A stretch of 64,000 nt of DNA from Mytilus trossulus. Its lineage: Eukaryota. Each line of letters starts with the position of its first letter. Within the stretch, counting starts at the first letter, position 1. The stretch lies in assembly GCF_036588685.1 (NCBI RefSeq), contig NC_086377.1, forward strand, positions 34,162,001-34,226,000, in the 5' to 3' direction. Positions 39,901-57,323 of the stretch are shown here, in pieces. The translations under genes were made by a program, and so were the position numbers. Under the pieces are notes generated by a model that was not told the origin of the DNA, made no database searches, and saw only the letters and a program-made list of their open reading frames with translations.

Positions 39901-42900
39901 TTTTCGACTATTTTTAAAAGATGCATTTATTTACAAAATCATACTGGACGCATTTGTTCCTCCTGTCCCAAGTAAGGAGCCTCTGGTCTTCAGAAGTCTT
40001 GTATGTTTATTAATTTTTGTTCATTTATTTGTTTAGGGGTTAAGTACATCGTACATCTTCACTGAACTAGTACACTTTTTATAATAGTTTTTCGATATCG
40101 CTCGGGCAAAAATATTCATGAATATAATGCCTAACCATGTTAAAACTACAATAAAGTATAGTTTGTATCAATTATTTCTTAAACCTACCATTTTTTTTTC
40201 TGTGTTGGATTTTTGTGGCATTAAAAAATACAAGAGTATAAACTACAGTTAGAGCAATTTCTAACCAAAATACAAGATTAATATTGAATTTCAAATACGA
40301 CCAAAAGTAAAAATTTGCTCGCAGCGGAAAAATTCAACAGTTTGATTTTCAATTGAAATAAAATAATTGTTATAATTTACACACCGTTACTTTTTCCAAT
40401 ATAAATATTCGAACTATTTTGTTTGTTGTTTCCTTTATAAGTTTACATCATTTTTAAAAAGACCAGTGACTTCGATCTTTAGTAGACTATAAAGGGGGTG
40501 TTCATTATCTCTCTTTTGCTGTAAGTTTAATTTAGTTATTTTGTCATGAATGTTTTTGAATAAAGGAGAGTCAGGTTGTCTTATACGTCAATGATACATA
40601 CACCAAAAAGACGACAAAAAATAAAATAAGGTGCAACATTCATTCTCCATCAAAAGAATACATCACATGAATGTAATTTTTGTAAGAAAAATACCAATTT
40701 CGTGAAAAGTTGTGTGTTGGACTTAAGAGCCAAGGCAAATTGACAAATATATGAATGAACGGATCGATTTATGGTTTATAACAACAACGAAAAAATGATT
40801 TTTTTTGTCATTTGGATCTCTTCACAAACAAAGCCCACATGGTTAGCATTGCAATAAGATATTTTGTGAAATAACGCGGGACCCCATTACTTAAAAGTGT
40901 TCTTTTTTTTAAATGAATATTTTTTTTTATCATTATTTATTGATATCAGCTCTGAACATTATCATTCTTAAAAGTGAAACTGTAGTAAGTGATGGTAATT
41001 TTTTTTATTTAAAACAAATTCCTTAAATGATTTGTGAAAAGAAAGTTTCATAAATGATTTGTGAAAAGAAAGTTTCATAAATGATTTGTGAAAAGAAAGT
41101 TTCATAAATGATTTGTGAAAAGAAAGTTTCATAAATGATTTGTGAAAAGAAAGTTTCATAAATGATTTGTGAAAAGAAAGTTTCATTTATGTTTAAAAAT
41201 GTGTTAACAAGTGATTATTTAAATCCCCACTTGAAGGCCTCCGATAGACTGAGTGAGCATAAAATCATCGCCAACGACAAACAAGTTATCGGTGATTTTT
41301 TTCAGTATAATTACTAACAAACGTTTTACCGTCGACCACACTATTATGAATTTAATTCTATATATATACGTATTGAGCTGATCTGTAACAATACAATCTT
41401 CATGCCTTATATATCATGTACTGTAGTAAGCCGCTAGATTCAAACTGACGAGGAAAGGTAACACACGGCCACCGAGAGCTTTATTATTGTCAAGCCCAGG
41501 TGGTCGTGTGGTCTAGCGGGACGGCTGCAGTGCAGGCAATTTGGTCTCACGATATCTCAGTAGCATGGGTTCGAATCCCGGCGAAGGAAGAACAAAAAAT
41601 TTGCAAAAGCAAATTTACAGATTGAACATTGGTTGGTTGATGTTTAGACGAGTTGTATATACGTTTTGTTACAGATATAAATCAATTTATTGCTCATACC
41701 TATACATTATGAGCCAATGGCGTAATATGTGTTTTCTTCATTTAAGGTAGTTTGGTACGTCATATCCTTGTATAAACTGTCTTACACAATTCAAGTATAA
41801 TTTATCTACGAATACGAATGAAGATAACGAATGTACCCCCGTGTTACTTTTCTAAATTGGCTAGAGGTATAGGGGGAGGGTAGAGATCTCATTAACATGT
41901 TTAACCCCGTTGCAATTTTACGCCTGTCCCAAGTCATTGTGATTTTTAATCTTAGTACCTTGTGTATAATTCGGAGTTTAGTATGACGTCCATTATCACT
42001 GAACTAGTATACATATTTTTAAGGGGCCAGCTAAAGGACGCATTGATGGCCTTCGGCTGCTGTCTGCTTTCTGGTCGGGTTGTTGTCGCTTTGACACATT
42101 CCCCATTTCCTTTCTAAATTTAAACGTAAAAGAGACGTTGATTTTTTGTTTTAATTCTTAAAGGTCAGTAGTCCTATACATGCACAATGTGGCAGCCAAG
42201 TGACATATTTACTAAAATGAGTGCAAATGATCGACATAAAAAGATAAATCGTTTGTTGAATACATATTTAATACAGACATCATGGATAATTTAAATAAAT
42301 CTATATTTCTAAAGGAAAAACCTTAAAACTAAGGAAAACGCGTGCAAAATTCCACTGTGTAATGGCTAGCAATGTCTGAGTACAAGGATTAGCAACATAC
42401 CTATGCTATTGGATTTGTAACGACGTGCGTCAACCAAACAAAATCTTAAAAGTATACTTAGCCTGGGATAGTAATTCTTGTAACCAAAATAAAATATTAT
42501 ATGAAGCAGTGCTTTTCATGACAAAATGTTATCAGGAAAACTTCAATCGAAAAATTTGTAAGCCAGGAATATCCTTTGCTGCAATGACACGTTAATCAAA
42601 TTCAAAACGCATCAACTAATTCGTATTATTGAAACGTTAGATTTAATATTACCAAAATTATCAAAATAGACATTTATCAATTTAGGTTTATTTTTAAATA
42701 CATATTTATTTTTATTTCAAGGAATTCGCATGTCATACGAAAACTTAATTCGTGTCTCAAAGTATTATATGAAATGTTCGTTTATCAATTATTACACATA
42801 ATTCGTTTCTAAAGATAATTAATACTTTCAGGTATATTTGACGATCCAACGTGTAGCTCTGTGACTTACAACCATGGTGTATTAGTTGTTGGATATGGGA

Positions 42901-57323: not shown

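Follow-up and report, generated by a model that had tools for sequence, protein, structure and literature searches.

Minisatellites whose repeat unit spans an exon-intron boundary, so-called mirages, have been described in amphioxus, where the globin genes BflGb6 and BflGb9 contain them (PMC3087553). The affected genes are regularly spliced, the copies contain cryptic AG/GT signals and the arrays are unstable in length (PMC3087553). The original mirage case, Adh3, and further amphioxus loci are cited in the same paper, while PGBD5 was added and troponin C is counted among the mirage genes in another (PMC3902484). A related situation exists in intron 7 (IVS7) of the human F7 gene, where the first element of a 37-bp variable number tandem repeat spans the boundary between exon 7 and IVS7 and where the resulting pseudo-sites are functional yet silent (PMC1557585). 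There it was shown experimentally in mammalian cells that among the 5′ splice sites the one lying most upstream is picked by 5′-to-3′ scanning (PMC1557585). The locus described here lies in the mussel Mytilus trossulus, in a stretch of 64,000 nucleotides (contig NC_086377.1 of assembly GCF_036588685.1, positions 34,162,001 to 34,226,000 of the forward strand; hereafter the window, whose own numbering is used unless chromosome positions are indicated). The window contains three tandem cathepsin-L-like genes, the third of which (paralog 3) carries a large tandem array built from the end of its own exon 7 and the beginning of the following intron. Taken as a whole, this locus is very probably best explained as a real, young and locus-specific mirage-type minisatellite that has grown to satellite size.

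With the amphioxus mirages the mussel array shares a unit lying over an exon-intron boundary, copies that contain the splice signal, differences in length between haplotypes and concerted evolution within the cluster. The features that characterize mirages were found accordingly: the unit spans the boundary, the first unit is genuine, the copies contain the splice signal and the copy number varies between the two DNA data sets compared below (X1 and X7). Whereas the amphioxus units measure 10–160 bp and occur in a handful of copies (3 and 6 in two BflGb6 haplotypes) of a cephalochordate genome, the array of this mollusc comprises 154 copies in 13.9 kb with higher-order blocks of 11–33 units, and the splicing of the allele carrying it is predicted. 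As in F7 IVS7, identical pseudo-5′ splice sites come after an authentic donor, but F7 has several of them within a few hundred bases and here there are 153 over 13.8 kb, some of which are stronger than the authentic one. The array is an extreme example of the described mirage minisatellites and no new kind of element; what is new is its scale and its host. With it, a phenomenon described in amphioxus and in one human gene is extended to molluscs, and the known size rises by more than one order of magnitude compared to the amphioxus globin haplotypes (3 and 6 units).

Tandem Repeats Finder (TRF) reported one array at 42873-56739 with a period of 90, 154.1 copies, 96% matches, 0% indels and a score of 25919, and segmentation divided the same sequence into 154 head-to-tail units. 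Both results agree with an earlier note, made from the sequence alone, which had proposed 154 tandem units derived from the end of the catalytic exon and its donor; the only number in need of correction was the uniform length of 90 bp, which applies to 153 of the 154 units, with unit 117 measuring 91 bp. Each unit comprises the 65 nt at the end of exon 7, which start with the CAT of the catalytic His and stop two bases after the codon for the catalytic Asn (AAC AG), followed by the GT donor with 25 intron bases in total. Unit 1 (42873-42962) is the true end of exon 7, whose frame it carries on from 42832, and, as had been claimed, it shows 0 differences from the consensus. It is one of 27 consensus-identical units among the 154, with a mean distance to the consensus of 1.67 of 90 positions and a mean pairwise distance of 3.16. 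Units 2-154 all come after the donor at 42938. On the left the array is flush with the exon and on the right with unique intron, there is no foreign sequence between them, and the window contains no N. GT is retained in all 154 units and CAG|GT in all but one, the donor hexamer being GTTAAT in 139 units, GTGAAT in 10 and GTAAAT in 2. Readthrough past the donor reaches a TAA five codons beyond the exon end, so that an mRNA from any downstream donor would be truncated.

The host gene was identified by Pfam and PDB searches performed exon by exon, in which all Pfam matches exceeded the cut-off, and the joined coding sequence was checked locally for frame, length and number of stops. Three co-linear sets of Peptidase_C1 and Inhibitor_I29 matches on the plus strand of the window represent the three tandem paralogs, which extend over approximately 492-10898, approximately 17549-28612 and, for the array-carrying third one, 33810-57323. 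The model of paralog 3 comprises 8 exons with 993 nt and 330 codons and a single terminal stop (Table 1); AG and GT flank each exon boundary, and all 14 splice signals are intact. The catalytic motifs are present, with CGSCW in exon 4 and NHGV and VKN|SW across exons 7 and 8. For exons 6 and 7 the nearest solved chains are an invertebrate digestive cathepsin L, fibroinase and a cathepsin-L-like midgut proteinase, and in the best PDB alignment (9hjy, invertebrate digestive cathepsin L) the repeat unit falls on the DHGVL...WLVKN segment. Judged by an I29 propeptide preceding the Peptidase_C1 domain, paralog 3 is a cathepsin L-like peptidase of the papain family (C1A), with predicted activity and predicted L-type specificity. 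Behind the array the gene resumes intact at 57224, as had been noted before, with an AG-flanked exon 8 whose frame is open up to the terminal stop. Intron 7 has a length of 14,286 bp. Subtraction of the 153 extra units (13,771 bp) leaves 515 bp, which is indeed in line with the 254 and 632 bp of the equivalent introns in paralogs 1 and 2.

An in-situ origin of the array from the exon 7/intron 7 boundary, as the earlier note had envisaged, is well supported by its sequence, since unit 1 is the true exon end, the edges are flush and two diagnostic patterns occur only here. With up to 2 mismatches allowed, a 29-mer spanning the junction between units yielded 153 matches in the 1.3-Gb assembly, all 153 of them in this array, and a 32-mer covering the donor and the intron part (up to 3 mismatches) yielded 154 matches, again all in this array. 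The repeat has therefore not spread to other loci, a point for which such a genome-wide search had been suggested. The junction was also absent from the metagenome contigs that were scanned, which is uninformative as host DNA is rarely found there. At the right edge, the 154 units are followed by exactly 6 bases that repeat the beginning of the unit. Within the window these read CAGGGT, but a G>T difference at 56736, present in a second haplotype in X1 and in the X7 haplotypes, turns them into CATGGT, i.e., the unit start. By chance alone, a 6-bp match of this kind is expected about once in 4096 cases. The combination of 154 units with exactly 6 bases fits slippage or microhomology-mediated repair between two CATGGT sequences 90 bp apart.

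In the proposed scenario, a 90-bp segment spanning the exon 7/intron 7 boundary of paralog 3 would first have been duplicated in place, the likely cause being replication slippage or microhomology-mediated repair between the CATGGT at the His-Gly codons and its copy 26-31 nt into the intron. Microhomology-mediated end joining together with template switching has been proposed as a birth mechanism of new repeats (PMC8794474). Unequal exchange would then have brought the array to some 150 units, with duplications of 18-29-unit blocks as the latest step. As all extra units lie downstream of the authentic donor, they are intronic and drift neutrally. Provided that splicing uses the first of the 154 almost identical donors, as in F7 IVS7, the mRNA would remain unchanged, while any donor further downstream would lead into a stop five codons beyond the exon. 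That the repeat was instead carried in or amplified by a mobile element, for example by a Helitron or a miniature inverted-repeat transposable element with internal tandem repeats, appears extremely unlikely. Satellite repeats related to mobile elements are described as common in bivalves (PMC11136912, PMC8268682), but the unit consists of the host gene's own exon and intron sequence, both pattern searches found no copies elsewhere in the genome, and no foreign sequence lies between exon, array and unique intron. A transposon origin was ranked low, being contradicted by the host-derived unit, the single locus and the flush edges.

The assembled sequence was compared with reads over 56464-57700, a segment that covers three units, unique intron, exon 8 and the 3′ flank. 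In the DNA run X1 (Logan contigs) the measure is the k-mer depth of contigs, which, as the tool itself warns, is no copy number. Two unitigs of 59 nt that are identical to the unit had k-mer depths of 1344.8 and 1605.2, whereas the adjoining 587-nt unitig, which is single copy and identical to the window, had a depth of 19.6-20.1. The depth over the unit is thus 67-80 times that of the flank, and the read-depth check suggested in the earlier note speaks for far more than one or a few units. The 31-mers of the two unit unitigs occur on average 83.8 and 97.0 times in the assembled array, which corresponds to a depth of 16.1-16.5 per assembled unit copy compared to the 19.6-20.1 of the single-copy neighbor. 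The X1 reads hence hold about 0.8 of the assembled count, or about 125 units if the array is present on one haplotype only. Overall, the k-mer depth speaks for roughly 125-154 units. As far as this rough contig-depth measure goes, the array is shown to comprise on the order of a hundred or more units.

It might still be argued that the true locus has one or few units and that a short repeat was inflated by the assembler. The internal blocks of 1.6-2.6 kb with 99.9-100% identity are the kind of structure that assemblers may mis-copy, and the depth points to about 20% fewer copies than assembled. Against such an artefact stand the read-derived depth of the unit k-mers in X1 and the 65 distinct variants of the array, which are arranged in ordered higher-order patterns that collapse or inflation of identical reads would not make. 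An assembly artefact is largely refuted by these data and must be regarded as very unlikely. In X7, a DNA data set with another species label, most bins over the unit exhibited depths of 3.6-43, while the flank was mostly at 36-66 (range 28-121). With a unit depth about equal to that of the flank, the expansion seems to be absent or small in X7. This near single-copy depth, although likewise a rough contig-based measure, indicates that the array is young and polymorphic.

A profile of the distances between units showed minima at lags of 11, 18, 22, 29, 33, 44 and 51, with an 11-unit period. Besides the near-identical blocks listed in Table 1, units 48-65 and 66-83 (18 units) have 0 mismatches in 1620 bp and units 99-107 differ from units 131-139 by 1 mismatch in 810 bp. 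About one third of the array stems from very recent multi-unit duplications, as unequal exchange would give. The 65 distinct variants are spread evenly over the unit, their density per site being 0.74 for exon and 0.68 for intron sequence. Synonymous, nonsynonymous and stop variants occur in a ratio of 9:31:7, compared to 40:136:13 possible ones, and stops are present in 13 units. The extra units are free of coding constraint and evolve neutrally. The presence of the catalytic His and Asn within the unit hence looks like a coincidence of the exon layout. As the unit shares only about 75% DNA identity with the corresponding exons of the paralogs and an alignment of intron 7 from the three paralogs revealed no homology beyond the exons, the amplification is far younger than the split of the paralogs, which confirms the relative age that had been proposed for it.

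A selected function of the array, be it as a platform for binding of the U1 small nuclear ribonucleoprotein (U1 snRNP), as a timer or brake of splicing, or as a chromatin or enhancer element for the paralog cluster, could be read into the universal retention of GT and the nearly universal retention of CAG|GT, and into the fact that junction-anchored arrays recur in this genome (the checked case, 29 x 65 bp on the same chromosome, is described below). Yet the equal variant density in the exon and intron parts matches the neutral expectation, the array is seemingly absent or small in X7, and in such a young array the retention of GT needs no selection (2 sites at about 1.9% divergence). A selected function is therefore considered highly improbable.

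A second haplotype, strongly divergent and absent from the assembly, was found in X1 at a depth of 32 (seen at 56701-57366). Of the 132 bases that follow the array on the right, 12 differ from the window, as do 10 of 92 nt in the 3′ untranslated region (3′ UTR), and 385 nt of intron 7 are replaced by 331 other letters (56832-57218). The X7 haplotypes share many of its variants and resemble it more than they resemble the window. While the neighboring intron and UTR differ at 6-10% of their sites between haplotypes, the six differences in exon 8 between the window and the other haplotypes, among those listed, are all synonymous. With regard to transcripts, a 253-nt RNA contig (X15, from a mollusc sample) joins the last exon base of a unit, 56618, to 57224, the skipped part being bounded by GT..AG, and runs to 57396, followed by 22 loose letters, the final 15 of which are all A. 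With an identity of 97-98% to paralog 3, the contig is far closer to this gene than to paralogs 1 and 2. This shows paralog 3 to be a spliced and polyadenylated gene in the taxon. As to the normal mRNA known from mirages, a junction between a unit donor and exon 8 and a poly(A) end were observed, in a contig with the variants of the other haplotype and with a donor that may belong to any of the units. For the allele carrying the array, tolerance by the host gene appears plausible; indirectly, this is suggested by the intact open reading frame (ORF), the intact splice sites and the exclusively synonymous exon 8 differences among those listed.

Several observations weigh against the interpretation as a large and tolerated array. 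The exact count of 154 rests on the assembly, as no read spans the array and the k-mer depth accounts for about 0.8 of it. X1 possibly stems from the source individual of the assembly, in which case it would check the assembler and not the population, and one bin in X7 (56464-56505) reached a depth of 164, which makes a short array possible there. The X15 contig starts inside the unit and hence fits any of the 154 donors, and it shares the 3′ UTR variants at 57353, 57354, 57363 and 57364 with the non-window haplotypes, so that it most likely originates from an allele without the large array; it might also derive from a processed retrocopy. Raw RNA reads from X21 included none on the gene, which, with 6% of the run read and an unspecified tissue, is no evidence against expression; 4 reads were found and all of them fall on a dispersed repeat at 57430-57471. 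Finally, 12 downstream donors (GTGAAT, GTAAAT) are closer to U1 than the authentic GTTAAT.

Some of these points would also fit a real array on an allele that is null or hypomorphic, with an intron of 14.3 kb and 153 decoy donors leading to mis-splicing (downstream donor, premature stop, decay) or silencing. Such an allele could survive, being of recent age, present in a heterozygous or hemizygous state and covered for by the two neighboring paralogs and numerous further cathepsin-L genes. Consistent with this, the sole spliced RNA contig has the 3′ UTR variants of the other haplotype, 12 decoy donors are nearer to the consensus than the authentic donor, and the depth per assembled copy (16) is lower than the depth of a single haplotype (20), which fits an array on one haplotype. 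The gene family is large as well, with 76 exon-level Peptidase_C1 matches genome-wide. On the other hand, the ORF and all 14 splice signals are intact, none of the listed exon 8 differences is nonsynonymous (decay, however, may not yet be visible with so young an array), and pseudo-sites are silent both in F7 and in the amphioxus mirages (PMC1557585, PMC3087553). A null or hypomorphic array-carrying allele is regarded as rather unlikely. Mis-splicing of this allele would yield products that retain GTTAATATTG... after exon 7. If the allele is, in contrast, correctly spliced, it offers a strong natural test of how the spliceosome chooses among 154 equivalent donors.

Two further systems are informative for the transition from genic to satellite DNA. 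The CapA satellite of New World monkeys has its source in a NOS1AP intron (Valeri et al. 2018, as reported in PMC8210747). According to that account, it resembles the mussel array in being a tandem array with an identifiable single-copy genic progenitor that was amplified in one lineage, but CapA is a major multi-locus satellite of purely intronic origin, whereas the mussel array is located at its birthplace and contains coding sequence and a splice site. Giant introns filled with satellites are also known from the fertility genes on the Drosophila Y chromosome, which are still expressed (PMC8248703, PMC8794474). These likewise represent long tandem arrays within introns of expressed genes; their repeats are, however, simple satellites unrelated to the host exons, reach megabase scale and require special expression factors. 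The high abundance and the several loci of a classical satellite were not found in the mussel, as all copies reside in one 13.9-kb array that represents about 0.001% of the 1.3-Gb genome. The term satellite, which the earlier note had used, is therefore apt with regard to the length and homogeneity of the array and its blocks of 11, 18 and 33 units, but for a single locus of this share of the genome very large minisatellite is the more fitting name. The locus provides a clean case study of how unique genic DNA gives rise to a long tandem array: the sequence itself reveals the progenitor, the probable 6-bp microhomology at the start and the order of the block duplications, and a related taxon is seemingly without the expansion.

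A second donor-anchored array was found on the same chromosome at chromosome positions 11743281-11745174 (minus strand). It consists of 29 units of 65 bp with 91% matches, each unit containing ...TGTG|GTGAGTATTA with GTGAGT donors, and adjoins an open Cys-rich exon (…CESCPVGSQSYYNGLFCG). Arrays spanning splice junctions hence recur in this genome. One might speculate, with considerable doubt, that a systematic process in mussel genomes seeds tandem arrays at the splice junctions of transcribed genes, for instance by breaks or template switching coupled to transcription or splicing, and that such arrays can reach the size of satellites within a host gene that continues to function. If so, the locus would be a natural experiment in which 5′-to-3′ selection of the first site holds over kilobases outside mammals, and a passage from unique genic sequence to a satellite, as well as to new exons or introns, would have been caught in the act.

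Table 1. Features of paralog 3 and of its intron 7 array (positions in the window).
Feature	Position	Strand	Basis
Exon 1, ATG, signal peptide and propeptide start	33810..33955	+	Open frame MKLFL..., donor gtgagt, paralog matches 492-632 and 17549-17686
Exon 2, I29 propeptide	34808..34913	+	Pfam Inhibitor_I29 E=1.3e-10; ag/gt boundaries
Exon 3, propeptide end and start of mature enzyme	35310..35456	+	Open frame, DWR motif conserved in both paralogs; ag/gt
Exon 4, catalytic Cys (CGSCW)	35961..36084	+	Peptidase_C1 E=1.9e-15
Exon 5	36537..36637	+	Peptidase_C1 E=2.5e-9
Exon 6	37776..37938	+	Peptidase_C1 E=5.2e-8; best PDB names fibroinase, late digestive cathepsin L
Exon 7 with catalytic His and Asn; its final 65 nt form the exon part of unit 1	42832..42937	+	Peptidase_C1 E=6.9e-10; ag...AAACAG|gttaat
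Tandem array, 154 units (65 exon nt and 25 intron nt) and 6 extra bases	42873..56739	+	TRF; segmentation
Authentic 5′ splice site GTTAAT, weak (T at +3, A at +5)	42938..42943	+	Sequence
Units 4-32, origin of or partner in the duplication of a 29-unit block	43143..45752	+	Compared to units 37-65: 2 mismatches in 2610 bp
Units 37-65, near-identical to units 4-32	46113..48722	+	Block match; lag-33 minimum
Units 66-87, near-identical to units 15-36	48723..50702	+	2 mismatches in 1980 bp
Unit 117, sole 91-bp unit, with an additional A in the A-run preceding CAG	53313..53403	+	Segmentation
Mechanical 1005-aa ORF through the array, no gene	53357..56374	-	Open frame of a unit with a length that is a multiple of 3
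Right edge, 6-bp direct repeat of the first 6 bases of the unit (His-Gly codons)	56734..56739	+	CAGGGT in the window, CATGGT in other haplotypes
Unique remainder of intron 7	56740..57223	+	Single 100% match in the whole assembly
Exon 8, stop TGA; preceded by ...cttacag	57224..57323	+	Peptidase_C1 E=9.2e-8; RNA contig joins unit donor to 57224
3′ UTR, end approximate	57324..57420	+	X15 RNA contig reaches 57396

Two frames of the unit are without stops and 90 is divisible by 3, which leads to mechanical ORFs in the array with stop-to-stop stretches of up to 2236 codons. These stop-free frames (about 2,200 codons) are a trap for gene callers, which may report repeat proteins, and arrays of this type can disrupt the gene models of mussel annotations. 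The dispersed repeat to which the X21 reads belong extends over 57388-57640, just behind the 3′ end of paralog 3, and reaches k-mer depths of up to about 10,000-13,000 in X1 and X7. Paralogs 1 and 2 (492-28612) have the same orientation as paralog 3, open exon frames and intact Cys, His and Asn motifs. CGIA is a conserved motif of papain-family enzymes, and at 57285-57299 paralog 3 reads NQCAIAT, compared to NQCGIAS in paralogs 1 and 2. As no variant at these positions is among those listed for the other haplotypes, this deviation is unlike recent decay. Two further tandem repeats are located in introns of paralog 3, one with 4.6 copies of 62 bp and 79% matches in intron 1 (34225-34509), and a perfect one with six copies of 27 bp and 100% matches in the 4.9-kb intron 6 (41024-41186), away from the splice junctions.

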